Below, one piece after another: positions 1 to 48,152 of a DNA stretch of 64,000 nt (position 1 is the first letter of the stretch; each line of letters begins with the position of its first letter). Location of the stretch: positions 227,868-291,867 of IMG/VR virus record IMGVR_UViG_3300034117_001582; one strand, 5' to 3'. Made by a program: the position numbers and the translations under genes. Below the pieces are notes generated by a model. It searched no databases, was not told the origin of the DNA, and worked only from the letters and a program-made list of their open reading frames with translations.

Positions 1-80
1 TTTTCTTTTTTATTTTCATTAATAACTCGTCTAACAATTCTTGATAAATCGGATTCGGTAAGTCTTATTATTCTTGACAC
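1..80 (-). CDS. 5' part of a leader-A protein (runs off window): MSRIIRLTESDLSRIVRRVINENKKE...
   Basis: Manual translation from GTG at 80; perfect leader-A motif; not in ORF track because truncated. Confidence 0.85.
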   Translation of the reverse strand, partial: MSRIIRLTESDLSRIVRRVINENKKE

Positions 81-84
81 AATA

Positions 85-351
85 TTAATTTATTTTTGCA
101 TCGATAATAGCATCCATTAATGCGTCTTCAGCTTTTTTCCAATCGTCATTTGATGGAGTTTCTCCATTCTCAAATGAACCACCATTGTCCTCTACTTGTC
201 TTTTGGCTTCTTCTAGAATATCTGAAAAGCTATTCACTATAACCTCAGAAATTACGGCTAAACAAAACTCAGGGGTTTCAATGTCGCTTTCAGATTCTTC
301 TTTAATAACACGTCTAACAATACGTGATAAATCTCTTTCATTTAATCTCAT
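85..351 (-). CDS. Leader-A protein, small acidic cargo of unknown function
   Basis: MRLNERDLSRIVRRVIKEE; sense TATTTAT at 366-372. Confidence 0.85.
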   Translation of the reverse strand: MRLNERDLSRIVRRVIKEESESDIETPEFCLAVISEVIVNSFSDILEEAKRQVEDNGGSFENGETPSNDDWKKAEDALMDAIIDAKIN

Positions 352-426
352 AATACATTTTTATTATAAATACCACATGAACCAAAAAATAAGGATATTC
401 CCATGTAAAAGATTTTTATATAAAAC

Positions 427-840
427 TTATTTTTTTTGTTTGGGTACGCTAATACAGGATATCACTTTACCCTCACATTCCATATACTTCACAACCTCAA
501 CACCTGGAGGTATATTACCTGAAACGGTTGTTGTGGTTGTATTTCCTACCGTTACTGTAGATGAATTACCTTGTGCCATTAACCAGTTTCTTTCGGCATC
601 ATATTGGGCATACCTAAAAGCATCATACCCATAACCTTCACCTTTTATGGTGTTTGGTGGACAAGTAAATGTTTTTTCAACTTCACAACCAAATTTAACT
701 TGTTCAAATTCACCATCTTCCAAACGATTAAATAACTTATCAAAAAATTTACGGACCTTTTTTTTAAATCCACGTTCATTTTGTTCATATAATCCCATTA
801 TATGTTTTTTCTCTTCTTCGCTGATAATAAACTTATTCAT
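427..840 (-). CDS. Leader-E protein (MNKFIISEEEKKHIMGLYEQNE), Cys-containing cargo
   Basis: ORF track; TATTTAT at 852-862; upstream terminator. Confidence 0.85.
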   Translation of the reverse strand: MNKFIISEEEKKHIMGLYEQNERGFKKKVRKFFDKLFNRLEDGEFEQVKFGCEVEKTFTCPPNTIKGEGYGYDAFRYAQYDAERNWLMAQGNSSTVTVGNTTTTTVSGNIPPGVEVVKYMECEGKVISCISVPKQKK

Positions 841-868
841 ATTAATGATTTATAAATAAATACCATAT

Positions 869-903
869 AAAACAAAAAACCCCCTCCGTATAAGGAAAGG
901 GTT
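869..903 (-). terminator. Intrinsic terminator of the repeated cassette type
   Basis: C-run/G-run imperfect hairpin followed on minus strand by TTTTTTGTTTT. Confidence 0.75.
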
Positions 904-924
904 CACATATTAATATAAAATTAT

Positions 925-1155
925 TTACATACCATCTCTAAATCGAGATTCAGCGCCACGTCTTACTTTTCTAGACGATGTCATTTCATCAGCAATGTTT
1001 CTTAAAATACTAACGGTTTCTTCGTGACTAGAATTTGAGTTTCTTATAACATCCATAATATCGGAGTATAAAGTATTTTTTTCCATGTCCTCACTAACTA
1101 TACGTTTAACTAATCTTGTTAAATCTCTTTCTGTAAGTCTAATTATTTTTTTCAT
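925..1155 (-). CDS. Leader-A small protein (MKKIIRLTERDLTRLVKRIVSED)
   Basis: Start reassigned to ATG 1155; TATTTAT at 1160-1166 lies inside the longer track ORF. Confidence 0.85.
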   Translation of the reverse strand: MKKIIRLTERDLTRLVKRIVSEDMEKNTLYSDIMDVIRNSNSSHEETVSILRNIADEMTSSRKVRRGAESRFRDGM

Positions 1156-1172
1156 ATTAATAAATATCACAT

Positions 1173-1210
1173 AAAACAAAAAACCCCACCTTAATTAGAG
1201 AATGGGGGGT
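1173..1210 (-). terminator. Cassette terminator
   Basis: aaaacaaaaaaccccacc...atggggggt; 20-mer aaaaaaccccaccttaatta identical at 1178, 2303, 2829. Confidence 0.75.
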
Positions 1211-1212
1211 GA

Positions 1213-1305
1213 TTAACTTTTTCCGTGATAATCAAAATAATCTTTTCTGTCCTTAAGTACCGTTGCAATCACGAACGAAATACTTAATATACTAAATATT
1301 GCCAT
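1213..1305 (-). CDS. 30-aa hydrophobic peptide MAIFSILSISFVIATVLKDRKDYFDYHGKS
   Basis: Manual translation; TTGACT-N17-TATATA promoter-like site upstream (1312-1340); terminator downstream. Confidence 0.5.
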   Translation of the reverse strand: MAIFSILSISFVIATVLKDRKDYFDYHGKS

Positions 1306-1382
1306 ATACAATATATACTAAAAATTCATTCAATAGTCAATTATCGTAGGTTATGAAATAGTTAAGTTTAAACACCTAAAAC

Positions 1383-1820
1383 TTAATGAGTCGTTCTCTT
1401 TATCTTTTTATTCTTTTTCACATTAAAGTTATATCTTTTATCGTGAGAAGGACCCTTTTCATACCAAAACTCAATACAGTCAATATCAAGACCAGTTTTT
1501 TCATTAACATAAGAAAGAACGGTTTTAGAAAATAGTTTTTTTCTTGTTGCAACTTTTGGTATAAAATTATCTATTTCTTCTCCGGTCTCAGAATTAACAT
1601 ACATATCTTGTTTACACCCCTCACCTTTACCACCAACAGTATAAACTGTAAATATCGCATCACCGTATCCAATCGACTCATTTTCAAACGGATTACTATC
1701 ATTTGGATATATTCTTATCCTATCGGATTCTCTTTCATATGAAAGTTTTGGCCCATACAATACGTCCAACAAATTAAATACAATTTTCTGATACTGTGAT
1801 TTTGTTATGATTACGTCCAT
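1383..1820 (-). CDS. Leader-D-variant protein, paralog of 1869..2279
   Basis: MDVIITKSQYQKIVFNLLD; shares KKLFSxTxLSYVNEKTxLDIDCI with neighbour. Confidence 0.85.
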   Translation of the reverse strand: MDVIITKSQYQKIVFNLLDVLYGPKLSYERESDRIRIYPNDSNPFENESIGYGDAIFTVYTVGGKGEGCKQDMYVNSETGEEIDNFIPKVATRKKLFSKTVLSYVNEKTGLDIDCIEFWYEKGPSHDKRYNFNVKKNKKIKRTTH

Positions 1821-1868
1821 ATAAGATAAATATACAAGAAATAAAAACCACTACGAATATAGGGGGAC

Positions 1869-2279
1869 TTACTTAGTTGTTGTCTTTTTATTTTTTTTAA
1901 CGTTAAACCTATATCTATTTTCGAAATAAGTTTCATCATTATTATATATTTCATAAGGAAAATCAATACAGTCAATATCAAGATTTGTTTTTTCATTAAC
2001 ATAAGAAAGAATGGTTCTAGAAAATAGTTTTTTTCTTAATACCGCTGGTGGTAAATACCTTTCAATTTCCTCAATTGTTTGAGAAAGAACTAACATATCT
2101 CTTTTACATCCTTTAGATTTTCCCTGTTTTGTATAAACTCTAAAAATTTCTTCACCATGATCTGATAAAATCTCAAATATCTCCTCATCTTTTTTAACTG
2201 AAATATTTGGGCCATATAATGTGTCCAACAAATTAAAAACAATTTTCTGATATTGTGATACTGTTATAACAATTTTCAT
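1869..2279 (-). CDS. Leader-D-variant protein, paralog of 1383..1820
   Basis: MKIVITVSQYQKIVFNLLD; identical 17-nt start/promoter block catataagataaatata at 1818, 2277, 4752. Confidence 0.85.
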   Translation of the reverse strand: MKIVITVSQYQKIVFNLLDTLYGPNISVKKDEEIFEILSDHGEEIFRVYTKQGKSKGCKRDMLVLSQTIEEIERYLPPAVLRKKLFSRTILSYVNEKTNLDIDCIDFPYEIYNNDETYFENRYRFNVKKNKKTTTK

Positions 2280-2297
2280 ATAAGATAAATATAATGG

Positions 2298-2336
2298 AAA
2301 ACAAAAAACCCCACCTTAATTAAAAGATGGGGGTTT
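2298..2336 (-). terminator. Cassette terminator
   Basis: cccca..tggggg hairpin + T-tract on minus strand. Confidence 0.75.
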
Positions 2337-2358
2337 CTAAATTTATTATTTATATTTT

Positions 2359-2793
2359 TTAATGACCAGATTGTGAACCTCCATGGTCGTAACGTTCACG
2401 TGGGTCCTGTGAATATTGTGGGTCATACTTACTTGGTTTGCCGTAACTTGTATATTTTGATGTTTGATTGTCATCAACCATTTTCATTGCATCATTAGGA
2501 TTCATACCGTAATCGGCATAAATTAATCCTTTACCTTTTCTTTTTAAATCTCTCAATGATTCTTCATCACCTCTACAATATCTAATGATGATAACCTTGT
2601 TTCCGTCTTCATCTTCTTCAATATCAACATGACCTTTATTATCTTCTTCATCCATATATTCTTCTGATGAGTCACAATCAACGGCTTTTATATCAAATGT
2701 AAAATCCTCATTTGAATTTTCTTCCATTTCCATAATAGTTCTTTTAACAATTCTTGTTAAATCTCTTTCAGTTAATCTTATAATTCTTGCCAT
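2359..2793 (-). CDS. Leader-A protein, acidic cargo
   Basis: MARIIRLTERDLTRIVKRTIMEMEE; TATTTAT 2811-2817. Confidence 0.88.
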   Translation of the reverse strand: MARIIRLTERDLTRIVKRTIMEMEENSNEDFTFDIKAVDCDSSEEYMDEEDNKGHVDIEEDEDGNKVIIIRYCRGDEESLRDLKRKGKGLIYADYGMNPNDAMKMVDDNQTSKYTSYGKPSKYDPQYSQDPRERYDHGGSQSGH

Positions 2794-2828
2794 AATATTT
2801 TAATTTATTAATAAATACTTTGATATTC

Positions 2829-2864
2829 AAAAAACCCCACCTTAATTAAAAGATAGGGATTTTT
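2829..2864 (-). terminator. Cassette terminator
   Basis: Near copy of 2298-2336. Confidence 0.7.
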
Positions 2865-3164
2865 TTAGGATTTTAATTTATCCAAAACTTGAATAAGTTG
2901 GTCAGCTCGTTTGTCAGTGTGACTTCTAGAATCTTGGTGGACTTCCTCAATACGTCTATGGATATGTTCCAAAGTGATATCCAATTCACGTCTTTGGTCA
3001 TCCAATCTTCTTTGGGAGTATTCCATTTCCCGCAAATAAGACAATTCCAATTCTTTTAAATCTTTTTTTGTTCTAACAACCATAACTAACCCCCAAACAA
3101 GAGCAACAATAAAAATTATTGCAATAATCGAAAGGATACCTAAAGTAAAATAAAATGTTTCCAT
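2865..3164 (-). CDS. Single N-terminal TM helix + coiled-coil protein (no leader)
   Basis: METFYFTLGILSIIAIIFIVALVWGLVMVV then heptad-rich region; start reassigned to 3164. Confidence 0.75.
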   Translation of the reverse strand: METFYFTLGILSIIAIIFIVALVWGLVMVVRTKKDLKELELSYLREMEYSQRRLDDQRRELDITLEHIHRRIEEVHQDSRSHTDKRADQLIQVLDKLKS

Positions 3165-3230
3165 TAATTTAAGATTTTGTTGTTTATACCTCAAGGGTAT
3201 ATAAAGTATAATGAAAACATATTAAAAATA

Positions 3231-3260
3231 AATAAAAAACCCCTCTTTGTTGGGAGGGGA
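3231..3260 (-). terminator. Cassette terminator
   Basis: cccctc..gagggg hairpin + T-tract. Confidence 0.7.
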
Positions 3261-3289
3261 ATCATTTTAAATTTATCAAAATAATTGTT

Positions 3290-3727
3290 TTAGTGATTTT
3301 CTCCTGATAAGTACTTAGGATTTGGATATACTATCTTCTTATTATATAATTTATTCTTATCTTCATCGGATAACTTTGGGGTCTTGTCTTTGGATTTGGA
3401 TGCAAGTAGTGAAACAAGTGGTTCTAATGGTGTTAAAGGCACAGGAGATTTAATGAGCAAACAATTTAATACTTTTGTTACTTCTTTTAGATTATTGTAG
3501 GTCAACATATTTCCAATAGCATTTAGACATTCTTTACTTATTAAATCTCCAGTACCCATAGTACCAGACAAAGTCTTTTTAGGTTTTGTGTCACAAGATT
3601 TTGGTATACTTAGAGTTGTTTTACTAAAACAGCCACCGACCATTGATGTGGTGTCTTCCTCTTCTTTAAGAACTCTTCTTACAATACGTGATAAATCTCT
3701 TTCTGTTAATCTAACTATTCTTGCCAT
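3290..3727 (-). CDS. Leader-A protein, Cys-containing cargo
   Basis: MARIVRLTERDLSRIVRRVLKEEE; TATTTAT 3744-3750. Confidence 0.88.
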   Translation of the reverse strand: MARIVRLTERDLSRIVRRVLKEEEDTTSMVGGCFSKTTLSIPKSCDTKPKKTLSGTMGTGDLISKECLNAIGNMLTYNNLKEVTKVLNCLLIKSPVPLTPLEPLVSLLASKSKDKTPKLSDEDKNKLYNKKIVYPNPKYLSGENH

Positions 3728-3756
3728 AATATTTTAATTTATTATAAATACTTCGT

Positions 3757-3788
3757 AAAACAAAAAACCCCTCTGTTGGGAGGGGGAG
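3757..3788 (-). terminator. Cassette terminator
   Basis: cccctc tgttgg gagggg + T-tract. Confidence 0.75.
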
Positions 3789-3807
3789 TATTTTAATTTT
3801 TTTAAAA

Positions 3808-4254
3808 TTATAGATATGCTTTTATATGATTTCTTTTTAACCAACTTCTAACTTGTTCCTCTGTTTGACCTTTTTGTATTTTTGATAATACATGTTTACG
3901 GTCACCATTACCTAGTATTTCACCGGTTTTTGGAACATATTTTATCATGAGATACCCGTCCATTGGTTTTTTTAATTGAATCTCTATGCCGGTTTTAGCA
4001 GTTACGGTAACCTCTTGATATGTTTGTAACTTTGCATACCTATCGGTACCATCGTCTTTACAAGGAATTTCTTTATAATTATTATCAATACAACTGTCAG
4101 GATCTCCATACCTATCGGTATCATTGCCCTTACAAGCTATTCTATTACCTTTAAAATCAATACAGAATCCTTCTTCATCCGCAGTATTTTCATTAATTAT
4201 TCGTTTAACAATTCTTGCTAAATCAGATTCAGTTAATCTTATAATTCTTGCCAT
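3808..4254 (-). CDS. Leader-A protein with short internal repeat (CxxxxxxxxxC..D.TDRY twice)
   Basis: MARIIRLTESDLARIVKRIINE; TATTTAT 4270-4276. Confidence 0.88.
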   Translation of the reverse strand: MARIIRLTESDLARIVKRIINENTADEEGFCIDFKGNRIACKGNDTDRYGDPDSCIDNNYKEIPCKDDGTDRYAKLQTYQEVTVTAKTGIEIQLKKPMDGYLMIKYVPKTGEILGNGDRKHVLSKIQKGQTEEQVRSWLKRNHIKAYL

Positions 4255-4349
4255 AATTTATATTTTATTATAAATACATCATAAAACAAAAAAGGAAGGG
4301 GGCGGGGGGATGGTTCAATGTAAAAAATTTTTCCAGAAAATTAGCCGTG

Positions 4350-4754
4350 TTATAAATACAATTTTATTATATCAATAGGGTCCAACCCTATTTCACTAAT
4401 ATTAAATAGTTTGTTTAAACGGTCTCCCGTTAATGAGGAAGTTGCTCCAAGTTCATTATCTATTTCTATATCATAAAATATTTCCAAAGCAAATCCACCA
4501 TTGCGTTCGCTATCCACAAATAAAAAAGTTCTATCCTTAAATTTAATAAGATACAAAGGACCAAATGGTTTTACCTGAGACCTAAACCACCAACGGGTTA
4601 CCAAATCACGAACATTAGTTGGCATATCATCATACGTCTCAATAAGTTTAACTTCCAATTCAAAATCAAACTCATATTTCAAAAACTTTTTAAACTTATC
4701 GGTTTTTGATTCAAACAATAAGTTATACTGGTCTTCAGTTATAATGATTTTCAT
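4350..4754 (-). CDS. Leader-D protein (MKIIITEDQYNLLFES)
   Basis: Start reassigned to 4754; TATTTAT 4760-4766. Confidence 0.85.
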   Translation of the reverse strand: MKIIITEDQYNLLFESKTDKFKKFLKYEFDFELEVKLIETYDDMPTNVRDLVTRWWFRSQVKPFGPLYLIKFKDRTFLFVDSERNGGFALEIFYDIEIDNELGATSSLTGDRLNKLFNISEIGLDPIDIIKLYL

Positions 4755-4770
4755 ATAAGATAAATATAAG

Positions 4771-4804
4771 GAAACAAAAAACCCCACTGATGAGGTGGGG
4801 AATT
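4771..4804 (-). terminator. Cassette terminator
   Basis: ccccac tgatgag gtgggg + T-tract. Confidence 0.8.
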
Positions 4805-4826
4805 ATTTTACATATTATAAGGATTA

Positions 4827-5432
4827 CTAATCAAGTTCTGAACCCCATGATTTAATTATATTATTAATTGGTTTTTTGTGCCATTTTCTATAAATGTCAA
4901 TACTATCTTTAACATCTTCCATCATATCACCATTAAATCTTTGTTTATATAGGGTTACAACTTCATTATATTTTTTCCAACATTCAGGACAGTTTCCTTC
5001 TTTTTTTAAAGGTTTTGACATATTTAAAAATGCTGCTTCAATAGGGGCTTCCGCATTCCCATCAGTTATAAACTCAGGAGCGGAGTAATCTTTAGGTACC
5101 ATCTTTTTTCCAAATTCTTGTTGAATCAAGACCGCTAATGAGTGACTTTTCTGTAATGATGCGTAAATTAAATCGGCAAGTTCTTTTGTTGTCATTGAAT
5201 TTTCAATATAGTTATAATCAAGTTCTCCACCTTCAATAACGTCCCTATACAAATTTTTAATTTTTTGAATAAAGGATGGTTCATTTTGTTCAGAAATTAA
5301 AGGTTTAACATCTCCCAATGTTGATTCCATTAATTGTTTAAACCTTGAAGTATCAACCGACATACCCCCATTATGTTGTTCACGAATACTATTCTTTTCT
5401 TCGTCTGATAAATTATTTAATAAATGTTTCAT
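4827..5432 (-). CDS. Leader-E protein (MKHLLNNLSDEEKNSIREQH...QLMESTLGDVKPLISEQ)
   Basis: ORF track; TATTTAT 5451-5457. Confidence 0.85.
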   Translation of the reverse strand: MKHLLNNLSDEEKNSIREQHNGGMSVDTSRFKQLMESTLGDVKPLISEQNEPSFIQKIKNLYRDVIEGGELDYNYIENSMTTKELADLIYASLQKSHSLAVLIQQEFGKKMVPKDYSAPEFITDGNAEAPIEAAFLNMSKPLKKEGNCPECWKKYNEVVTLYKQRFNGDMMEDVKDSIDIYRKWHKKPINNIIKSWGSELD

Positions 5433-5463
5433 AATATATTTGTTTTATTTATAAATACCACAT

Positions 5464-5498
5464 AAAACAAAAACCCCCACTCGTTGGAATAGGGGTTT
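5464..5498 (-). terminator. Cassette terminator
   Basis: aacccc..ggggtt hairpin + T-tract. Confidence 0.75.
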
Positions 5499-5518
5499 AA
5501 TAATTTGACCGATATGAA

Positions 5519-5878
5519 TTAATATTTAGGTTCTCTACCACACGTTAGTTTATAGTAGTAAATTATAAAATCAAGTTTCTCATTAATTAGATATTCCCTT
5601 ATTGATAAATCCAATGAATTACCATCAGATTCAAATTCAGATTTAATCTGTTCATTATGTAAATATAACCTTAAAAACAATCTTTCCATTACATGATTAA
5701 AGTATGTTTTTAGTTTTAAATATTTACAAATTTTCATATCAGACAATATCCCTATTAACAATTCAGTTATATCAATCCCCCTTCTTCTGAAATATGTGTC
5801 ACTTATTGTTGATTCAGATATTACCTGTTTAACGATTCTTGTAATATCTGATTCCGTAAGTCTTATAGTTTTTTTCAT
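5519..5878 (-). CDS. Leader-A protein (MKKTIRLTESDITRIVKQVISE)
   Basis: Start reassigned to 5878; TATTTAT 5885-5891. Confidence 0.85.
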   Translation of the reverse strand: MKKTIRLTESDITRIVKQVISESTISDTYFRRRGIDITELLIGILSDMKICKYLKLKTYFNHVMERLFLRLYLHNEQIKSEFESDGNSLDLSIREYLINEKLDFIIYYYKLTCGREPKY

Positions 5879-5898
5879 ATAATGATAAATATATGGGG

Positions 5899-5930
5899 AA
5901 ATAAAAAACCCCACTAGTTGGAATGGGGGG
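5899..5930 (-). terminator. Cassette terminator
   Basis: acccca..tggggt hairpin + T-tract. Confidence 0.75.
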
Positions 5931-5934
5931 TATC

Positions 5935-6309
5935 TTATCTTTTATTCCATTTGGATTTTAATTTGGACTTGTATTTTTTTGGGATGTACTCAAATAAAAA
6001 CTCTTTCACCCTCTTTCTATATTTTTCATCTACCTGTTTAAAATAAAACCCCGAACCTCTAAGTAACTTAAATGTGATTAATCCCCCCATTTGTTCTAAA
6101 AAATGGTCTTCATTTTTAAAACCATTAGTATCTATGTCATCAATAGTTTTATTAACAACATTTAATATGTGGTCATTTAATGAAGTATCTTTTTTATTAT
6201 AGAATCTTTCTAAATCCGATATCTTTTTTATTTCATCACTTTCTTCAGTTATAACTCGTCTAACCATTTCTATAAGTTCTGATTCTGTAAGTCTAATTAC
6301 TTTTTTCAT
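5935..6309 (-). CDS. Leader-A protein (MKKVIRLTESELIEMVRRVITEE)
   Basis: ORF track; TATTTAT 6327-6333. Confidence 0.88.
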   Translation of the reverse strand: MKKVIRLTESELIEMVRRVITEESDEIKKISDLERFYNKKDTSLNDHILNVVNKTIDDIDTNGFKNEDHFLEQMGGLITFKLLRGSGFYFKQVDEKYRKRVKEFLFEYIPKKYKSKLKSKWNKR

Positions 6310-6641
6310 AGTATTATTGTTTAAATATAAATACCCCTATTTTCCTAAAATTTTTCTGGAATTTTTTTTTAACATATAGGGGGTATTCCGACTTTTAAAG
6401 AATTTTTACCAAAATATTTTTTAAGACCATATACCCTTTTTTATAACCCATACTCTGCAAGAGGGATTGACCCCCCTTTTGACCCCTGACATTGTGTCAG
6501 AAAGAGGGAGGATACGGGGGAGGGGGCCCCCATTAAATGAGGGGAGGGGGGTATGCCAAAGATATGAGGGGGGTAGACATAGGGGATGTTAGTTATCAAC
6601 ATAATGTTCATAAAGATATATGAAATAAATGTGGGGGATTG

Positions 6642-6673
6642 TTTGGCAGTATCAATAACATTCACTATCTTTG
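6642..6673 (+). promoter_or_regulatory. Bacteroidota sigma70-type promoter
   Basis: TTTG (6642-45) N20 TATCTTTG (6666-73), exact -33/-7 consensus. Confidence 0.75.
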
Positions 6674-6755
6674 TATAGACAATGTGAGAGAGATGTCGGG
6701 CTGAGGGAACAACACCCTTTGGAGTGTAGACTCCAACCTGCCTTTATAATATATA

Positions 6756-6968
6756 ATGGGACTTATAAATAATTATGTTAGACCCCCTTGTCATATGAGA
6801 TATTATACTTATCTTTGTTATATGATTTTTATATACATAACACTTATCTCGGTCATCCTTATTGTTGGGGTATCTATTATGATTCTTAAGTGTTCCCCAT
6901 CTTCTAAGGTGTCCTCGTTTATTCGTAGACATATCATTACTGATGAAGACCTTGAACCATTGGACTAA
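6756..6968 (+). CDS. Small membrane protein (start uncertain)
   Basis: One strong hydrophobic stretch; downstream of + promoter; converges on 6965..7282. Confidence 0.5.
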   Translation: MGLINNYVRPPCHMRYYTYLCYMIFIYITLISVILIVGVSIMILKCSPSSKVSSFIRRHIITDEDLEPLD

Positions 6969-7282
6969 TCCCCATAGAACTCTTCCATCTTTTGTATTCC
7001 CATGTTTACTATTGTAGTTCTTATATCATGGTAGTCATCCTCAGATAAATTATAGTATTGATTTAAAAACTGTAATACATCTGACATGTGGGCATCAACT
7101 ATTACAAATTGTCTTTTACTTACAATTGGTTTCTTACTCCATCCCTTCTTAGCAAATTCAAAATAGATTACACCATCATCGGTTAATCCCTCCTTATGTT
7201 TGAATATACATTTAATCCCCTTACTATCCTCAGTAATCATTGGGGAGTATTGTTCTATGATAAATTTTTCTATTACGTTCAT
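6965..7282 (-). CDS. Hypothetical protein
   Basis: 105-aa ORF; TATTTAT 7301-7307. Confidence 0.75.
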   Translation of the reverse strand: MNVIEKFIIEQYSPMITEDSKGIKCIFKHKEGLTDDGVIYFEFAKKGWSKKPIVSKRQFVIVDAHMSDVLQFLNQYYNLSEDDYHDIRTTIVNMGIQKMEEFYGD

Positions 7283-8050
7283 AACTATACATTAAGGTTA
7301 ATAAATATATTCCATAATGTGAATAACAAATGGGGATGACAGTATGTCAGGAGGGAATTGTTGATAACTATTTATGTTAATTTATTTGATTTTGTCAAAA
7401 TGTCAGTCAGCGAACACGAACGGGACAATCCCTTTTCCCACTTTATCCCACATCTTCTTACCACTATTTACCACCACAATTCCCTCTGTTGCTATAGTGA
7501 GACTAATAAATCCCCTCTATCAGTACCGCCATAAAGGTTTTTTTAGGTATACAGATTTTCCAGCTAAAAATTGTATTAATACTGTAGAGGCGGCCGAGAC
7601 GTAGTCTTATAGTTCTTCCAACGTATAGGGAACCGAAAATATCCCCTTCAACGTGTCATTAAGTCATATCACCAACGTTTAAGACCTCTATAGTTTAGTG
7701 GTAATATGTGGGACAATTAGTCATATCATATAAATCAGGTTTCACCTGACCACAGTGATATATAACATCAGTCCCTCTAATAAGTTCTATGTATATTATT
7801 CCCTTATACATAACGAAGTTATTCTATATATGAATTACTTTAAAGAACACCATATACCACATGTGAATGTCTACCACTATTATGGGGAGAGGTCGAAGAC
7901 CGATTAAATGGGGGGAACTATCAGGTAAACTTTCTATACCTGAGAACCTCATCATGTAAAAGAACTATACATTATCTTATCGTAATGTGGATTACTGTAA
8001 TGACCATTACATTACTGTTTAAGATATGTCCCATTAATTACCACATATCC

Positions 8051-8110
8051 TTTATACAAAGGTAACGATTACTCTTGTTTTTTATACGAAGGTAAAGATT
8101 ACTCTCGTTA
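8051..8110. repeat. Tandem 30-bp direct repeat, each copy holding a minus-strand TACCTT(T/C)G promoter-like element
   Basis: tttatacaaaggtaacgattactcttgttt / tttatacgaaggtaaagattactctcgtta, 26/30 identical. Confidence 0.75.
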
Positions 8111-8236
8111 AGAGTATAGGATAAATTTATGAGGTGAATTCCGTAGTGATAACGGAGGACTATGAACCGAATGAATTAATCGTATAGTCTAACTTACTTT
8201 CCCTATAATGTAGAGGATTAGTTATTTTATACATTA

Positions 8237-9358
8237 TTATGCGTAGTTAACGTCTCTTGTTGTATCTATTTTTGCAAACTCCTGAGAGTAATCGTATATC
8301 TTATTTAAATCCACCTCTATATATGAATCATACTCATCTTTTACTGTTTTTGTTGCGGTATTAAAAAGTGTTTTAACGTCATGTGCGTCAGTATCATTAA
8401 TAAACAATTTAAAATTTAATAACGTAATATCTTCTGTACTTTTGAATGGTATCTTCATTAAATTATTCTCGTAAACCACATTAAAAACATTATCACCACT
8501 TTTAATCTTAACATTATCTTTTATTAATTTAATAAAATTATCTAATGTTCCAAAATCATCTACCCCTAAAAGTCTTTTTAAATTTTGAACTCTTGATGAA
8601 TTTTCAGTAGCAGAGTTACCGTAATCGGTATTAGTATTAACGGAAATTTGGGGGCCTTTAGCGTCTTCTGGTAAATAATCCACACCCTTACTGATAAAAT
8701 ACCCGCTAAGGCAGTGATTAAACTCGTGTACTAAAATTAACATAATAGAGTTTTTATTAACGTCACTTGGAAATACATTTTTAACACAAAAATTCAACTT
8801 AGAATATTCACCTTTAATAACAAACCCACCTGTAGAATCGTCACATGTCAAACTAAAAACTAAATTTACACTATTTAAAAAGTTTTTTAATTCATTTTTT
8901 TGTTTGTTATCCCATGCCGTTATCACGCCTTTTAATTTTACCTCCTCTTCTTTTACCATATCATTAAAAAACTCAAGGGTTTCTTTTGCTCTTTGTAATT
9001 CAGAAATATTGGCATTTTTTAACCCATTAACTTTGTTTTGCCAATTAATTACTTGTTTTTTATATTTTTCTAAATCTTCTGTATTGTATTTAGAACCTTT
9101 TCCTATTTTTTCTTGAACTTTTTTATTGAACCACTCGCTATCTATGTATTTTAACATGTAAGTTTTTGCTTCTGTAAAAAATGGTTTAACAAAATTTTCA
9201 ACCTCTGTTATTTTTTCTTGTTCGGTTTTGGCTTTGTCTTCCCAATAGGCTCGAAGGGTATTTAAATTAATGTTTTTTAATTTACAAGCATCATCCACTT
9301 CCTCTTTAATTACACCCATTATTGATTGTATTCTTCTTATGTTTTCGTGTAAATTCAT
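8237..9358 (-). CDS. Leader-B protein, putative zincin metalloprotease (HEFNH), paralog of 11853..12920
   Basis: MNLHENIRRIQSIMGVIKEE; ILVHEFNHC plus downstream E; TATTTAT 9363-9369. Confidence 0.85.
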   Translation of the reverse strand: MNLHENIRRIQSIMGVIKEEVDDACKLKNINLNTLRAYWEDKAKTEQEKITEVENFVKPFFTEAKTYMLKYIDSEWFNKKVQEKIGKGSKYNTEDLEKYKKQVINWQNKVNGLKNANISELQRAKETLEFFNDMVKEEEVKLKGVITAWDNKQKNELKNFLNSVNLVFSLTCDDSTGGFVIKGEYSKLNFCVKNVFPSDVNKNSIMLILVHEFNHCLSGYFISKGVDYLPEDAKGPQISVNTNTDYGNSATENSSRVQNLKRLLGVDDFGTLDNFIKLIKDNVKIKSGDNVFNVVYENNLMKIPFKSTEDITLLNFKLFINDTDAHDVKTLFNTATKTVKDEYDSYIEVDLNKIYDYSQEFAKIDTTRDVNYA

Positions 9359-9375
9359 ATTAATAAATATATCAT

Positions 9376-9412
9376 AAATAAAAATCCCCCCATCTTTACA
9401 AGTGGAGGATTA
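9376..9412 (-). terminator. Intrinsic terminator
   Basis: aatcc..ggatt imperfect hairpin + T-tract; related sequence at 14705-14730. Confidence 0.6.
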
Positions 9413-9418
9413 GTCATT

Positions 9419-10120
9419 TTATGGTACTTGTTGTAACCCTAACTCAAAGTAGTCATACTCGTTGTTGTAAAATCTTGGATTGTTTACAAATATATTATAC
9501 ATTGGAAGTAAAATGTTATGTAACTCTTCTTTCCATTCGTCGTAGTCAGTTTCTGTCATATCACTTATAAAATATTTAGGTTTTACTTTTTCTAATGTTC
9601 GTTCTAAATTGTCTTGAAGATTAGTTTTTCTTAGGTTTGTTATATTTCCATAAACATATACTTCTACTTCAGGGTCATTTGTTGTGACATGCGTGGTTTC
9701 ATAATCAAAGTCAAACTCATAACGATAAAACACCCCCGAAAAATCAATATGTTTAATTTGTTTTCCACTAACATTAAGATGTGTTCTATCTTCTTTTGAT
9801 ACATAACAATTGTTTCTGATATTTTTCATCCATGAAGCAAAATGCTTATATTTGTTAAAATCAGTGTTTGTCATATCACAAAATGATTTAAACTCATCAT
9901 GTAAAACTTGAGTTAGTATTGTTTTTGAATATGAATAATCATTTGGGTTTTTAACTTTCCATTTTATTTGTAACCCTGTCCATTTTGGAACTAAAAAAAG
10001 TCCTTCGAATTCTATTGGGTTTTCATTTAAATAATTATAATAGTAATACTTTACAGGATTTTCTTTAGGGTTGGTTCTTTCTTCCCTTAATACTCTTCTT
10101 ATGTTCTCTTGTAGGTTCAT
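9419..10120 (-). CDS. Leader-B protein (MNLQENIRRVLREE), unknown cargo
   Basis: Start reassigned to 10120 (4-nt overlap with upstream stop). Confidence 0.85.
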   Translation of the reverse strand: MNLQENIRRVLREERTNPKENPVKYYYYNYLNENPIEFEGLFLVPKWTGLQIKWKVKNPNDYSYSKTILTQVLHDEFKSFCDMTNTDFNKYKHFASWMKNIRNNCYVSKEDRTHLNVSGKQIKHIDFSGVFYRYEFDFDYETTHVTTNDPEVEVYVYGNITNLRKTNLQDNLERTLEKVKPKYFISDMTETDYDEWKEELHNILLPMYNIFVNNPRFYNNEYDYFELGLQQVP

Positions 10121-10848: not shown

Positions 10849-10861
10849 ATTAATGAATATA

Positions 10862-11071
10862 TTATTTTTTGATAATTCTTATTCTTTTTTTTTCAATCCA
10901 ATTTTTTAATTCTTGAGTTTCTGGTACTTCAGTTAAAACAAACTCCCTAATATAATCATCGGCTAAAAAATTTGGTAAATTAACGGGTTGAAATCCCATT
11001 TCGTTTTTTGTGATTAAGACCAAATGATTTTTTTTTCTTTTGTGTCTTTTGGTGGGTATTAGTTTTTTCAT
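10862..11071 (-). CDS. Small basic hypothetical protein
   Basis: 69-aa ORF in operon order. Confidence 0.6.
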   Translation of the reverse strand: MKKLIPTKRHKRKKNHLVLITKNEMGFQPVNLPNFLADDYIREFVLTEVPETQELKNWIEKKRIRIIKK

Positions 11072-11111
11072 TTATGTTTTATTATTCTTTTTATATAACC
11101 TTGTAGGTTCA

Positions 11112-11429: not shown

Positions 11430-11430
11430 A

Positions 11431-11838: not shown

Positions 11839-11852
11839 ATTATATGAATATA

Positions 11853-12920: not shown

Positions 12921-12935
12921 AATGATAAATACTTT

Positions 12936-39078: not shown

Positions 39079-39582
39079 TTACAATTCTACAACTATATAA
39101 TCATTTTTACAAAAATTTTCTTCTAACCTTTCTTTTTTAGTTTTTACTTTATTAAGCAAAAAATTACCATCTTTCGAATAAGCGGAGGTAATTATTGATA
39201 GTTCATTTCCGTCCTTTTGGAGTATAAATTCAACAAAATCAAAATATTCTGAATTATTATTATTCTTAATTTTTTTTATAAAAATAATTCTATTGCTGCA
39301 CGGTTTATTTAATTTGAAACTTTCTACAATTTTTTGAATGTTATTTTTAATTGTTGGTGCCAAAATTGAGTCTGTCGCACCTATTCGATAGTCATATCCC
39401 TTTTTATCAAGTATGTCAATGTGTTTTAATAGTGAGTCATCACCATGTCTTTCAAACCACTGATGATATGTAGATATAATCTTATACATCATCTTATCAT
39501 AGACTTCAATACCTTTTTGCTTAGGAAATTTTTTTTCCTCCAAAAGATATTCTCTGAAAATTCTTTCTATTAATCTTTTCAT
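39079..39582 (-). CDS. Leader-C-like protein (MKRLIERIFREYLLEE)
   Basis: TATTTAT 39588-39594; terminator 39596-39628. Confidence 0.8.
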   Translation of the reverse strand: MKRLIERIFREYLLEEKKFPKQKGIEVYDKMMYKIISTYHQWFERHGDDSLLKHIDILDKKGYDYRIGATDSILAPTIKNNIQKIVESFKLNKPCSNRIIFIKKIKNNNNSEYFDFVEFILQKDGNELSIITSAYSKDGNFLLNKVKTKKERLEENFCKNDYIVVEL

Positions 39583-39650: not shown

Positions 39651-40232
39651 TTATTTTCTATCCATTCTTGATTTGTCGGCGGCCTTGTAGTGAAAACCGG
39701 TTTTATACTTATCATATCCACCTCTTTTAAAGAACGCAGAGTCTTTTAAAGTCACACCCAACAAAGAAACAATACCAGCAACAAGAGCGGCTCCACCACC
39801 AATAAACATCGCGGCCGGCACAATTCCTAAACCAGCTATCAAACTAGTATTTTGAACAATTTTATCTAAAATTCCTCTTAATTTCATTTCAGTTTCACTC
39901 ATTCCGTATTGTTTTTCAAAATCCTCATACATCATTTCGTCAACTTCTGAATAATTAGCATCTTCCTCTTCCATTTGTGATACCACATCCATCAACATGT
40001 CTTCTAATTCATCTTTACCTTTACGTTTCATTAAATCACTAAGGAATCTCATTTCAGATGGTGAAATAGTATGTTGTAGTTCTTCTTTAGCGGTTTCTAA
40101 ATCCATTTTAGAAAAATCCGATTCCCCTTCCATTTCTTGGGAGTCTGCCATCCATTGTTCTTCATCTTCTTTGATAATTCTTTTTACCAAATTAATAAGT
40201 TCGGATTCTGTTAGTCTTATAGTTCTTTTCAT
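39651..40232 (-). CDS. Leader-A protein, acidic with C-terminal hydrophobic hairpin
   Basis: MKRTIRLTESELINLVKRIIKE; LIAGLGIVPAAMFIGGGAALVAGIVSLLGV. Confidence 0.87.
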   Translation of the reverse strand: MKRTIRLTESELINLVKRIIKEDEEQWMADSQEMEGESDFSKMDLETAKEELQHTISPSEMRFLSDLMKRKGKDELEDMLMDVVSQMEEEDANYSEVDEMMYEDFEKQYGMSETEMKLRGILDKIVQNTSLIAGLGIVPAAMFIGGGAALVAGIVSLLGVTLKDSAFFKRGGYDKYKTGFHYKAADKSRMDRK

Positions 40233-40258: not shown

Positions 40259-41176
40259 TTATAGTTTTAAAATATCTCCAATTTTTACAAAATCATCATT
40301 AAATTCTTCCATTCGCATTCTATCTTCATAATCGTAGTCATCAATATCATTATAATTAGTGATAATTAATTCATATGAAAATGCGCTATCGTTAGCATTT
40401 AATTCTTCAAATTTTTCTAAAGTCATTTCGGTGTCTTCAAACTTTTTAATTTTTGAACCTAGCACAACAATACTCATATAATTTATATTAAAATAGTCTT
40501 CGGTAGATTCTTCTTGTCCACTACCATCACAATTTGAACATTGAACATCACCATCTCCACCACAATCACTACAGGATAAAGTTTGTGATCCGTCACATTC
40601 ATTACATTCATAATTACCCTCTCCACTACAATTTGAGCAAGCTTCTTTACCCGAACCATCACAACTTGAACATTCAACTTCTATCTCTTCACCTTCATCG
40701 TCATAATCAGTTTCTTCACCAGAACCATCACAATTTGAGCAATCTTCTTTACCCGAACCATCACATTCGTAACAATCTTCTTTACCCGAACCATCACAAC
40801 TTGGGCATTCAACTTGTCCATCTCCATCACATTCGTAACATCCCTCTTGACCTCCACCATCACAGTATGAACAATCCATGGTTTTTTTGGTTAACTCAGT
40901 AAAAATTTGAATTTGATATTCATAAAGATTACTAATAATTTTTACTAAACCGTCTGTTGGTATTTTTGGGTTTCTAATCATAAAGTAAGTAGCAAAAATA
41001 GTTTTTGTTCTTTCTCTATGTGTGTTTAGTTTAGAAAATAAAACATTAACCAAATGGTCATTGTCTGAAATACGTTTTAGATTGTTTAACGTTTTTATAC
41101 CCATACCTTCACTTTCAATATAATTTTTGAAAGTTTTAGCAATTGATAATATTTTTCTTATCTCTTCTTGATTCAT
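40259..41176 (-). CDS. Protein with ten CxxCxGx(G) repeats (DnaJ-type Zn finger array), no J-domain
   Basis: 11-aa period; no HPD; start reassigned to 41176. Confidence 0.85.
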   Translation of the reverse strand: MNQEEIRKILSIAKTFKNYIESEGMGIKTLNNLKRISDNDHLVNVLFSKLNTHRERTKTIFATYFMIRNPKIPTDGLVKIISNLYEYQIQIFTELTKKTMDCSYCDGGGQEGCYECDGDGQVECPSCDGSGKEDCYECDGSGKEDCSNCDGSGEETDYDDEGEEIEVECSSCDGSGKEACSNCSGEGNYECNECDGSQTLSCSDCGGDGDVQCSNCDGSGQEESTEDYFNINYMSIVVLGSKIKKFEDTEMTLEKFEELNANDSAFSYELIITNYNDIDDYDYEDRMRMEEFNDDFVKIGDILKL

Positions 41177-43708: not shown

Positions 43709-43732
43709 ATCACAAATATATTAATTATTTTT

Positions 43733-45194: not shown

Positions 45195-45226
45195 AATACA
45201 AATATAATAAATAAATTTAGATTAAA

Positions 45227-46471
45227 CTATTTTTTTTTGAATTTAAATTCGGTTTCTATTTTTCTTTTACCGTATTTTTTTTCCATTAGTTTTTGGTGTA
45301 GTTCCCAATTGATAATTGATTCGCTGACAGGTTGATTATCATCTTTTGCCATTGCATATAATTTTGATATTTTCTTTAACATTTTAGTTGATATATAATT
45401 AAATTTTTCACATTCAGCCTCAAAGAATCCCGTTGGGTCATTTTGAAATTTAATAAGGTAATTTAAAAACTTAGTTCTTAAGTTATCCATTTTTTCTTTA
45501 TTGTCATCCTCCATAAAAGATGGGACATTTTTAGACATTAGTTTTAAAAAATTTCTTATCTCATCAGCTTTATCTGAAATCATATCATTAAAAATCCCCA
45601 TTCTAAGATTTACTAAGTTAACATAAACAAGATTTAGAACCTCATCAATTTTTTCATTTTCCGACATATTTTCAGGATCAGTACCAATGTGTTCAAGTAA
45701 AGCGTCCACCCTATTCATTTGTTCTTTCATTCCTTCAATTAAATTATTAAATGTAAAATTTTTAATTTCAATAAATTCTTTATAAACACTGTTATTTTCT
45801 AAAAATTCTTTGAATTGTGATTTGGTAATATTTTTACTTTTAAGTTCTGAAGCGACCTCTGTTGTTCTAACCAAATTTTCAGCAATTGAGGTATAATACA
45901 TATATCTAAAGAATTTATGATCAATTACCGGAATACCAAAAGTAGACATTCTTTGTGTTGCAGTATATTCGGCATCTCTACCAACTAAATCTAATTCTTT
46001 TGCTTGTTTATCATATTTGTGTTTTAATTCGTGAGCAATAGCCGATAAATGTTTTACCCTTTCTTTCATTATCGTATCATATAACTCATGTGGTTCCCAA
46101 TTTTCTGAAACACCAAATGTTATTTCAATCTCAGCGGTTGTGGATGGTTCAATTCTTTTCATCATCACTTCTCTATCAAAGTTAAATGATTGACCCATAC
46201 CCATTGACATAATCAAAACATTACCATCATAACCATCAAGTTCTTCCACATTAACCGTTAACTCATAACCATCAATTACGATTTTTTTCTTATCTCCCAA
46301 TTCAAAATCTAAATCACCACTAAACGCATATGTGTTTTCTTTTTCATCTATTGATTTAACATCATTTACAACAATATCAAAAACTTCTTCAGCAGCAGCT
46401 AAAATAGAATCAGGAACCCCTAACGCTTCGTTAATAAATTTAAGTTGTGATTCTGTTATAATAATTTTCAT
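45227..46471 (-). CDS. Leader-D protein with HExxH (AHELKH) putative metalloprotease
   Basis: MKIIITESQLKFINE; HELKH then AENL; C-terminal VSE|SIINWELHQ module; TATTTAT 46476-82. Confidence 0.8.
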   Translation of the reverse strand: MKIIITESQLKFINEALGVPDSILAAAEEVFDIVVNDVKSIDEKENTYAFSGDLDFELGDKKKIVIDGYELTVNVEELDGYDGNVLIMSMGMGQSFNFDREVMMKRIEPSTTAEIEITFGVSENWEPHELYDTIMKERVKHLSAIAHELKHKYDKQAKELDLVGRDAEYTATQRMSTFGIPVIDHKFFRYMYYTSIAENLVRTTEVASELKSKNITKSQFKEFLENNSVYKEFIEIKNFTFNNLIEGMKEQMNRVDALLEHIGTDPENMSENEKIDEVLNLVYVNLVNLRMGIFNDMISDKADEIRNFLKLMSKNVPSFMEDDNKEKMDNLRTKFLNYLIKFQNDPTGFFEAECEKFNYISTKMLKKISKLYAMAKDDNQPVSESIINWELHQKLMEKKYGKRKIETEFKFKKK

Positions 46472-46497
46472 ATTTATAAATATATTGAAGTTATGGT

Positions 46498-47151
46498 TTA
46501 ACCCACAACTCCATCTATATCATCTAAGTGGTGGTCATTCACTATTTCTGAACGAACTTCACGGCGGTCCATCATATGAACAATCTCAGTTAATTTATAA
46601 GGTTGGTAGTTATTACCATCAACACCAACATCCAATCGTTTCCCATTACCCCATTTTTTATTTGTAGGTAAGTGAACGTGTCCGTGAAGTTGGATTGCCC
46701 CTTTTGATAGTTGATTCCAACTACATAATGGATAGTGAGACAATACAAAGTCAGCACCACCAATATTTACTTCCAAATAATTTTGAATAGATAAAAACCT
46801 ATCATGGATATTTTCTCGATTATTTTTAATGTGGTGGTCGTGGTTTCCTAATACAAGGTGAATGTTTTTACAAACCAAACGATCCAAGAATTGCCCTATT
46901 TTATCAAACCCACCAAAAGAGAAATCACCCAAGTGAATCAACGTATCGTCAGGTCCAATTTTTGAATTGATGTTATCAACAATAACACTATTCATATCCT
47001 CAATACTATTAAAGTCTCTTGTCGATTCTATAGGGGTTTTACCGTCTTTGGTTCTCCAATTGGTAACTCCGCGACAAATGTTTTTGTGCGAATAGTGAGT
47101 GTCTGAAGTAATCCAAACAACCCCACTAGTTAATATTTTATCAAATTTCAT
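46498..47151 (-). CDS. Calcineurin-like metallophosphoesterase
   Basis: SDTHY.H, HLGDF, GNHD, SHYP, HGHVH. Confidence 0.9.
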   Translation of the reverse strand: MKFDKILTSGVVWITSDTHYSHKNICRGVTNWRTKDGKTPIESTRDFNSIEDMNSVIVDNINSKIGPDDTLIHLGDFSFGGFDKIGQFLDRLVCKNIHLVLGNHDHHIKNNRENIHDRFLSIQNYLEVNIGGADFVLSHYPLCSWNQLSKGAIQLHGHVHLPTNKKWGNGKRLDVGVDGNNYQPYKLTEIVHMMDRREVRSEIVNDHHLDDIDGVVG

Positions 47152-47154
47152 TTC

Positions 47155-47547
47155 TTATATTTTTATCTCAAAACGGTTTTTCATTTGTTCTAATTTATCG
47201 TCAGGAACTCCATGTTTGTTTGTTCCTCCGTGTCTATTTTCCACAATAATAGAGGTCACATAATAACCATACTTAATTGCCAATTCATAATATGGTTGAA
47301 GTTCCCATTCTTGTGTGAATGTGTTTGACACTGCAATTTTTGGTGTGTTTGACTCCATTGCATATCCAACATATTGTTGACACTCTTTATGAGCATCTTT
47401 TATTTCAGATGCAATAAAATTGTAGTTACCATCATTATCATAAAAATAATGGTCTGCCTCAAAAACCCAATTTGGGGCTAATTGTTTTGCTAAAGTTGTC
47501 TTACCACTTCCTGGTATTCCTCTAACTAAATATATCATTTTTTCCAT
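47155..47547 (-). CDS. P-loop polynucleotide-kinase-like protein (AAA_33)
   Basis: RGIPGSGKTT, EAD.YF, VSNTFTQ.WE, HGVP...M..RF; TATATTTG 47552-59. Confidence 0.85.
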   Translation of the reverse strand: MEKMIYLVRGIPGSGKTTLAKQLAPNWVFEADHYFYDNDGNYNFIASEIKDAHKECQQYVGYAMESNTPKIAVSNTFTQEWELQPYYELAIKYGYYVTSIIVENRHGGTNKHGVPDDKLEQMKNRFEIKI

Positions 47548-47588
47548 AGTACAAATATAATAAACAATTTGATAATATTTATCAATAT

Positions 47589-48152
47589 ATGAAAATAATA
47601 ATTACAGAAGAACAATACAAAACAATTTTAACCGAAAACATATTAAAGGATATTTTAAAAGACTTTAATATTACTTCCGGAATATTATTTACGTTTGGTT
47701 CCGGAATGGCCGCACTTATGGGACCAGTGGATAGGTTATTAAACAACTCAGGATTTTCATTAAGTGAAAAAGAAATATTACTATTATTAATCACATCAAT
47801 TGCAATTATCATTAAGGACTCCGAATCTAATATATTATTAGATGAGGTTAAAGAAAAAGGATTGACTGAGGCCCTTAATGGTGTTGGTGAATTTTTAATT
47901 AACACTAAAAAACTAATTAATAATATATCAAGTAAAGTGATTGGTGTTACTTATTCTCTATTAGATATTTTAGGTTTTGCATTATTATTAAACCCAACGA
48001 TGAATATCGTAAACGACATAATATCTGATGAAAATATAACCTCATCAGACACAAATAGATTATTATCAGGTGCCGCATTTGCAACGGTAGTTTACGGATT
48101 AAAAAGCGTAATGTCTAAAATTAAAAATAAAATAACCCCAATCGAAGATTAA
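47589..48152 (+). CDS. Leader-D protein with several hydrophobic helices
   Basis: MKIIITEEQYKTILTEN; plus-strand TATTTAT at 47576-47582. Confidence 0.85.
   Translation: MKIIITEEQYKTILTENILKDILKDFNITSGILFTFGSGMAALMGPVDRLLNNSGFSLSEKEILLLLITSIAIIIKDSESNILLDEVKEKGLTEALNGVGEFLINTKKLINNISSKVIGVTYSLLDILGFALLLNPTMNIVNDIISDENITSSDTNRLLSGAAFATVVYGLKSVMSKIKNKITPIED

Follow-up and report, generated by a model that had tools for sequence, protein, structure and literature searches.

Short shared N-terminal leaders on diverse proteins of an uncultured T4-related phage: candidate capsid-targeting propeptides

The stretch of DNA analysed here (64,000 nucleotides, positions 227,868 to 291,867 of the IMG/VR virus record IMGVR_UViG_3300034117_001582, hereafter the window) holds, within its positions 1-48152, 41 open reading frames (ORFs) that begin with one of five short N-terminal leader families, A to E, placed ahead of mostly unrelated cargoes. 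Considering that the leaders end in the cutting motif of a T4-type head protease encoded by the same genome, the leader proteins are most likely loaded into the capsid, trimmed and delivered. We think it probable that the leaders are capsid-targeting propeptides of a phage of the T4 superfamily, by analogy with T4 itself, and that the cargo would be packaged, trimmed and ejected into the next host. In T4, N-terminal capsid-targeting sequences of 10-20 residues bring internal proteins into the prohead, along with foreign proteins to which such a sequence has been fused, and are cut off afterwards, and the packed internal proteins are ejected into the host (PMC9026906, PMC9958956, PMC5694885). 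The T4 prohead protease gp21 cuts after L/I-X-E (PMC9026906, PMC5694885, PMC9958956), and a targeting leader has been suggested as a general route by which T4-like phages pack varied proteins (PMC9026906).

Leader families and their closing motif

A first-pass annotation of the window had listed about 40 leader proteins. The ORF lists contain 41, of which 11 carry leader A (one runs off the start of the window and one, 85-351, is shortened), 9 leader B plus 2 weak members (22326 and 33479; genes are named here by their lower coordinate), 7 leader C, 10 leader D and 2 leader E (Table 1). Hidden Markov models (HMMs) of the families, run against the six-frame translation, agree with this list and gave strong matches (E 1e-6 to 1e-16) at ORF N-termini only; the sole internal match in the window, at 17395-17436, was weak (E 0.0018) and falls within the fused ORF 16846-18441, and there was no match in the window's 48-64 kb. 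All-versus-all BLASTP of the cargoes, from residue 31 onward, revealed two related pairs only, 8237/11853 and 1383/1869, so that the cargoes, described at first as unrelated throughout, are so in nearly all cases and not in these two.

The conservation ends sharply. Over 296 distinct leader-A proteins, drawn from the window, viral loci and database representatives, information content is high at positions 1-22 and about zero by positions 24-25, with I, L, V or M at position 20 in 98% and Glu at position 22 in 99%. Leader C closes in L9-K-E11 (L9 in 90%, E11 in 100%), leader B consists of two subtypes closing at E13 or at about E19, and leader D shows I5-T6-E7 in 96-97% with Q9 kept, while L13-x-E15 occurs in 57% only. 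Counted from Met1, the conserved blocks thus span 11 residues in C, about 15 in D, 13-19 in B and 22 in A. Most leaders contain two hydrophobic-x-E motifs, the second being L7-T8-E9 in A and I5-T6-E7 in D.

Aligned within one cargo family, A and B have in common the core hydrophobic-R-R-hydrophobic-hydrophobic-x-E-E, to which A adds an N-terminal piece. Five families can be recognised, as first proposed, but A, B and C look like one superfamily because the core hydrophobic-R-R-hydrophobic-hydrophobic-x-E is common to them. The leaders had also been described as basic amphipathic helices, which is borne out for the charge of A (+2.6) and C (+1.7) and not for B and D, both about neutral, nor for the amphipathicity of D as a helix. 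They are not hydrophobic signal peptides, in agreement with the annotation: a test for Sec, lipoprotein and Tat signals found no hydrophobic core of at least 10 residues, and the leaders are charged throughout, with a mean hydropathy of -0.1 to -0.8. True signal peptides occur elsewhere in the window, in proteins encoded at 48-62 kb. A test for leaders of ribosomally synthesised and post-translationally modified peptides or bacteriocins found no Gly-Gly site and no modification genes, and the cargoes, of 52-507 residues, include folded enzymes.

In leader A a short strand seems to lead into an amphipathic helix, an arrangement that would also suit a short module for oligomerisation or nucleic-acid binding, for instance the strand and helix with which a ribbon-helix-helix domain begins, shared by a paralogous family. 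We give this explanation next to no weight, since no second helix follows, conservation stops at residue 22 and gives way to an acidic linker, Pfam finds no match, the cargoes are unrelated and AlphaFold2 places a leader detached from the fold behind it. The resemblance of leader A to CopG/Arc-type N-termini, a presumed one judged by eye, was set aside together with the ribbon-helix-helix likeness, for want of a second helix and of a Pfam match.

Head module, prohead protease and upstream boxes

Window positions 1-14254 are 99.5% identical to a 246-kb JGI freshwater contig (3300034356, Ga0335048_0000009), which is the window's own contig; among the loci looked up (L001, L066, L100 and so on), L097 and L100 lie on it. 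At 84.9-94.8 kb of the record, 67-77 kb from window position 1, this contig carries a T4-type head module preceded by large tail-like genes. The module (L100:10667-20603) encodes, in T4 gene order, a large terminase (Terminase_6N), Portal_T4, Peptidase_S77 (PF03420, the family of T4 gp21; L100:16116-16826), an acidic scaffold-like protein of 516 residues (L100:17204-18754) and Gp23. The gp21/S77-type prohead protease, whose presence the first-pass annotation had proposed to check, is therefore found on the window's contig, and it recurs on related ones: the protease of the related contig L091 aligns to the solved T4 gp21 (5jbl, 1.1e-14), and the capsid protein of that contig to the solved T4 gp23 (about 1e-24). 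The nearest capsid protein from a cultured phage, that of Microcystis phage Mel-JY01, is only 42% identical, and we therefore see the phage as branching deeply within the T4 superfamily. In the window's genome, the capsid protein has five hydrophobic-x-E motifs in its first 60 residues and the next one only at residue 356, as expected of a T4-like propeptide. When the strict form [IL]-x-E is counted, only this propeptide and p242 (L100:14322-15050, rank 3 of 143) stand out.

Leader genes and head genes lie together in relatives. In L066 the order is terminase, portal, two small genes, S77 (L066:8499-9203, E 1.6e-22), genes for 69 and 170 residues, two leader-A genes, an acidic scaffold-like gene and Gp23 (2.3e-74), and two leader-A genes likewise stand between the S77 and the scaffold and Gp23 genes in L067 and L079. 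A 128-kb contig with 11 genes in common with the window (36-89% amino-acid identity) has leaders of families A, B, C and D and a head module. Portal_T4 (4.5e-73) and the large terminase are among the recurrent neighbours of leader genes, and genes of the head-module neighbourhood occur in 23 of 77 leader-A loci.

Directly ahead of the head module, on its upstream side, the window's contig has genes for a ClpB/ClpC-like double AAA+ ATPase of 681 residues (L100:4490-6535, minus strand) and, beside it, an M42/M20-like peptidase (L100:3406-4440, minus strand); the pair may act in disaggregation or cargo unfolding. In general, Clp unfoldases are known to recognise tags at the N-terminus, and the pair recurs in 17-19 of the 77 leader-A loci, so that the leader could be a tag for this ATPase and peptidase, by which leader proteins would be unfolded at a set time, turned over or delivered to another part of the cell. 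We judge this improbable. It leaves unexplained the invariant Glu at the end of conservation, the motifs of the capsid propeptide and the leader genes between protease and scaffold, and the co-occurrence may merely reflect a conserved leader gene near the head module.

The head-module region has some further features. A homolog of ribosomal protein S21 (PF01165) is encoded on the opposite strand at L100:15343-15537 (minus), between the portal-side genes and the protease, and again at L091:9235-9423. In L066 the portal gene (L066:3772-6750) is split by an intein with an HNH endonuclease domain, and the large terminase occupies two ORFs (L066:2061-2435 and 2489-3730). Among the tail-like genes of the window's contig, L097:10407-19283 encodes 2,958 residues with no Pfam match. 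Two conserved neighbours of the module have leader-like starts, a protein of 382 residues (L100:2261-3409) with I-F-E at residues 7-9 and one of 464 residues (L100:8216-9610) with LRRIME near residue 20; on this evidence both may be further substrates of the protease.

Of the 40 leader genes, 23 have an (A/G)TATTTAT box upstream whose end lies 4-20 nt from the ATG; most of these genes follow an intergenic gap and do not abut the previous gene. Examples of the box stand before window positions 21988, 26213, 30905 and 46471 and before L100 positions 14322, 16116 and 17204. The S77, p242, scaffold and large tail-like genes have it in front of them as well, which suggests that leader genes are co-expressed with structural genes, and TATTTAT may be a phage-specific late promoter. 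A -7 box of the Bacteroidota type, TAnnTTTG, was found at 8 of 64 other genes and at none of the 40 leader genes (sites at window positions 23936, 24780, 27534, 43708, 47547 and 50963).

Given the position of the TATTTAT box there is almost no 5' untranslated region, and this would also fit leaders that have no targeting role and instead reflect a constraint on DNA or mRNA, namely a near-leaderless translation start, or 5' homology that aids recombinational shuffling. Some leader pairs do share long identical nucleotide runs (about 41 nt in 11431/11853), and codon identity is somewhat above expectation: where two leaders agree in a residue, its codon is also identical in 61-79% of cases, whereas codon usage predicts 47-53%. 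From these figures, selection acts mainly on the leader peptide and not on the DNA. Residues are kept despite frequent synonymous differences, the peptide persists across thousands of clusters and, inside fusion proteins, even at positions where translation does not start, and genes that have this upstream box but no leader encode ordinary N-termini, all of which makes such a constraint a very unlikely source of the leaders.

Cargoes, their exchange and their distribution

Leader-cargo units are swapped and fused. Five clusters of homologous cargo occur with differing leaders, and one small HExxH domain has leader A in front of it in L058 and L066 but leader B in L024, L041 and the window, so the leaders are swappable, as first supposed. 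The second unit of ORF 16846-18441 is a free-standing ORF in relatives, and many database proteins have a second, internal leader; because some of these internal leaders lack a Met, true leader-cargo fusions exist. Cargoes are hypervariable between related genomes. Leader and cargo behave as separable modules, through which cargo genes are gained, swapped between leader types and fused.

Pfam recognised domains in only two of the 40 complete leader proteins, a pterin-4a-carbinolamine dehydratase (11431) and a lysozyme with LysM (29982), and a PHROGs scan of the window cargoes gave nothing beyond Pfam. The only trace of MuF in these 40 proteins was a sub-threshold MuF_C match on 39079 (E 0.0055), so no MuF domain was found by Pfam. 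Among 77 leader-A proteins from elsewhere there were one TseH-like cell-wall hydrolase domain, one GNAT, four marginal matches and none in the rest. The lysozyme with LysM and the TseH-like domain suggest that some cargoes are cell-wall hydrolases. For the HExxH unit, AlphaFold2 predicted a confident cargo fold (predicted local distance difference test score, pLDDT, 84; predicted template modelling score 0.81) that begins directly after the leader Glu, with the leader as a detached helix of low confidence (residues 1-17, pLDDT below 50). The best Foldseek match of this cargo, the minimal metallopeptidase abylysin (4jiu), is weak (E 0.55) and merely agrees with the motif. The lysozyme cargo was modelled poorly (pLDDT 57, alignment of 3 rows), and its leader D gave only a strand-helix of low confidence.

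Since about 95% of the cargoes have no recognisable domain, an effector role (the 'arsenal' of the first-pass annotation) is the weakest part of the interpretation. The same proportion would fit leader proteins that are packaged and cleaved but are mostly internal parts of the head or core (scaffold helpers, DNA organisers or parts of an ejection conduit) and not effectors. Many cargoes are small, acidic or of low complexity, hydrophobic segments in 39651 and 47589 would suit a membrane conduit, and T4 IPII and IPIII are likewise without a known effector role (PMC9026906). Structural parts are usually conserved, whereas these cargoes are hypervariable and fall into about 8,000 clusters, and the enzyme-like ones (HExxH, lysozyme, TseH-like, GNAT) point to host substrates; on balance we hold a mainly structural function to be unlikely.

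The leaders are widespread in metagenomes and restricted to viruses. Beyond the left end of the window its contig has at least 12 further leader genes, giving at least 53 within the about 155 kb examined. The scan of relatives proposed with the first-pass annotation was made with the leader-A profile on 1.84 billion representative proteins. It gave 7,969 clusters when E<=1e-3 was required and 250 with the cut-off at E<=1e-10, and the match begins at residue 1 in nearly all of the best 150 matches listed; ten clusters that were looked up are all metagenomic, without informative names. Breadth of this kind needed an exhaustive HMM search, as a word-indexed protein search with the leader region gave 37 candidates only. 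IMG/VR contains no fewer than 446 confirmed leader-A loci, and the leader-D pattern matches there at least 600 times, while 185,579 bacterial and archaeal species (one genome each) yielded leader A at 7 loci only, all on contigs of metagenome-assembled or uncultured-organism genomes. The 77 viral loci contain 205 A, 35 D, 28 B and 8 C genes, the leader being N-terminal in more than 95%; families A to D occur together in L022, L024 and L041, and A, B and D in L057 and L081.

Table 1. Leader-bearing genes of the window and the internal leader of one fused gene (window coordinates).
Position	Strand	Leader	Cargo and remarks
1-80	-	A	5' end of gene, runs off window; leader at 9-74; full gene of 208 residues at L001:14175-14801
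85-351	-	A	shortened N-terminally; 88 residues
427-840	-	E (SEEEK type)	137 residues; a leader of that type adjoins the head module (L100:813-1661)
925-1155	-	A	76 residues
1383-1820	-	D	no terminal Glu; cargo paralog of 1869
1869-2279	-	D	no terminal Glu; cargo paralog of 1383
2359-2793	-	A	acidic cargo
3290-3727	-	A	
3808-4254	-	A	Cys-rich cargo (P0001)
4350-4754	-	D	
4827-5432	-	E	second motif ends PLISE
5519-5878	-	A	
5935-6309	-	A	
8237-9358	-	B	HExxH-motif cargo, paralog of 11853
9419-10120	-	B	
10117-10848	-	B	
11112-11429	-	A	cargo partly found behind leader B in L069
11431-11838	-	B	pterin-4a-carbinolamine dehydratase
11853-12920	-	B	HExxH cargo, paralog of 8237
14764-15273	-	B	cargo homolog with leader A in L022
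15323-16393	-	B	C-terminal part is an own ORF in L069 and L041
16390-16845	-	B	
16846-18441	-	B	two leader-cargo units fused
17395-17436	-	internal	at fusion joint; second unit an HExxH domain, separate ORF in relatives
18443-18766	-	C	
18766-19209	-	C	
19212-20273	-	C	cargo apparently duplicated internally (read from translation)
20276-20926	-	C	
20916-21347	-	C	
21344-21988	-	C	first gene of C/B array; TATTTAT box 4 nt before ATG
22326-23093	-	B-like, weak	
24855-26213	-	A	tandem-duplicated cargo
27601-28176	-	D	
28173-28469	-	D	
28469-28876	-	D	
28873-29985	-	D	
29982-30905	-	D	phage lysozyme and LysM domain
33479-34396	-	B-like, weak	
39079-39582	-	C	
39651-40232	-	A	hydrophobic segment in cargo
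45227-46471	-	D	HExxH-motif cargo
47589-48152	+	D	sole plus-strand leader gene; hydrophobic cargo

The window has 29-35% guanine plus cytosine, and 95 of its 104 crudely called ORFs lie on the minus strand. Its proteins recur on metagenomic contigs of up to 293.5 kb, and a leader-D stretch is found unchanged on an IMG/VR contig of 291,867 bp. At 48169-61683 follows a run of signal-peptide proteins, with Ser/Thr/Gly-rich proteins among them, a content unusual for a phage and a clue to the host: it includes a secreted non-specific endonuclease (54280-54873), a C-type lectin domain (55751-56797) and a protein with a type IX secretion sorting domain (Por_Secre_tail, 1.6e-12) and a cohesin-like domain (59773-61683). 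The Por_Secre_tail protein in this run argues for a host among the Bacteroidota, and the data together point to an uncultured T4-related phage of about 290 kb that infects Bacteroidota. The ORF at 40259-41176, which has a TATTTAT box and an N-terminus weakly resembling a leader, consists mostly of CxxCxGxG-type repeats (like the DnaJ central domain, sub-threshold). Positions 6310-6964 and 7283-8236 have no convincing ORF; no tRNA gene or Rfam family was found there or elsewhere in the window, and this region varies in related contigs, where the adjoining leader-B gene is called as 360 or 373 residues.

Proposed pathway and comparison with known systems

In the pathway that we propose, leader-tagged proteins would be made alongside head and tail proteins, as the common promoter-like box suggests, and the leader of 11-22 residues would dock the protein into the scaffolding core or prohead interior in the manner of T4 capsid targeting. 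Once the shell is complete, the S77 serine protease would cut after the Glu of the closing hydrophobic-x-E and probably a second time inside the leader, at L7-T8-E9 in A and at I5-T6-E7 in D, which would free the cargo within the head and break the leader into small peptides. The cargo would then stay with the DNA, be ejected into the next host and act before phage gene expression.

Several observations weigh against this pathway. Docking, cleavage and ejection are argued from analogy. The closing [ILVM]-x-E ascribed to all leaders, which holds for A and C, lacks its terminal Glu in the D members 1383 and 1869, and a hydrophobic-x-E lies within the first 32 residues of 47% of non-leader proteins as well; significance attaches to its constant position, closing the conserved block, and not to its mere presence. 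The notion that the scaffold-like protein is rich in sites was dropped, as its density of strict [IL]-x-E, 1.9 per 100 residues, compares with a median of 1.5. Thioredoxin, GIY-YIG and phosphatase genes also have a TATTTAT box ahead of them, so that 'late' is no more than a candidate label for it. The cargoes, with a median isoelectric point of 5.6, are not basic like T4 internal proteins, and one of them, the pterin dehydratase, is a metabolic enzyme. This is the one clear exception among enzymes: no leader was found on the window enzymes checked (thymidylate synthase, RNA ligase, thioredoxin, GIY-YIG, phosphatases and glycosyltransferase; thymidylate synthase, thioredoxin and GIY-YIG identified by eye), so that the recognisable replication and nucleotide enzymes of the window are free of leaders, where the first-pass annotation would have counted leaders on cytoplasmic enzymes against its proposal. 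Finally, the window DNA has no near match among GenBank phages, and tblastn of leaders A, B and D against 50,697 GenBank phage records (T4-like included) gave no leader match; no cultured relative with these leaders is therefore at hand, and descent from the T4 leader, though not the same mode of action, is disfavoured. None of the rival explanations accounts as well as capsid targeting for the boundary Glu, the protease and the gene positions taken together.

The closest parallel is offered by IPI, IPII, IPIII and Alt of T4. The phage described here has a T4-type head module (homologs of gp20, gp21, gp23 and the large terminase), a short leader at the extreme N-terminus with an L/I-x-E end, variable cargo behind a constant leader, and leader genes scattered outside the head cluster. 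It differs from T4 in having at least 53 such genes per genome against about 4-5, four or five families of leaders, 11-22 residues long and without detectable likeness to that of T4, two protease-type motifs in most leaders, cargoes that are not generally basic, tandem leader-cargo fusions and a Bacteroidota host.

The giant phages phiKZ, 201phi2-1 and SPN3US resemble it in having large heads with tens of packaged proteins in paralog families, an S77-related protease that cuts C-terminal to Glu, and propeptides with redundant sites (PMC5694885, PMC9026906). Their proteases prefer S/A/G-x-E, whereas P3 here is I/L/V/M (98%) as in T4; their propeptides often exceed 100 residues and do not form a small set of shared leaders, and the head genes here are closer to T4 and cyanophage types. 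The Dar proteins of phage P1 (DarA, Hdf and partners), as outlined in PMC9024508 and PMC12810830, are similar in being defence-countering proteins loaded into the capsid during assembly and injected. No homology to P1 Dar was found here. Dar incorporation follows a hierarchy of protein-protein dependencies and is not known to use a shared short leader. MuF and polymorphic toxins also join a constant N-terminal module to swappable C-terminal cargo, with proposed virion delivery (for the general logic, PMC3482391). The constant part of MuF toxins is a whole domain, in contrast to the leaders, and no MuF domain is present here. The cargo-loading peptides of encapsulins, short tags that send unrelated cargo into an HK97-fold shell, are comparable as well; these tags are usually C-terminal and not removed, the shell contains no DNA and it is not a virus.

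The principle is thus known from T4 and, in another form, from phiKZ-like giant phages. What is new is the scale (at least 50 genes per genome, with cargo clusters in the thousands), the leader families and the fact that they can be interchanged, the fusion of units in tandem, and Bacteroidota as the host phylum; in the literature on the motif strings and on expanded capsid-targeting systems in metagenomes we found no earlier description. In T4 a leader of 10 residues suffices to pack and inject a protein, yet only a handful of natural cargoes are known. We put forward, as a tentative and rather doubtful extension, that a T4-related lineage of Bacteroidota phages, many of them with about 290 kb of DNA, employs the capsid as an all-purpose vehicle for protein delivery, in which a few interchangeable leaders would send essentially any protein, including tandem polyproteins cut apart in the head, into the virion and on into the next host.

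The modular leaders show how phages acquire, swap and fuse cargo genes. If the proposal is true, a sequence tag alone would pick thousands of candidate virion-delivered proteins from metagenomes, and the leaders would be ready-made packaging tags for engineering such phages and for loading the capsids of non-model phages. The about 8,000 cargo clusters of leader A, largely unexplored so far, would then catalogue proteins for host takeover and anti-defence that are made beforehand and injected, and would offer an entry point to counter-defence and host takeover in Bacteroidota phages, where few such proteins are known.

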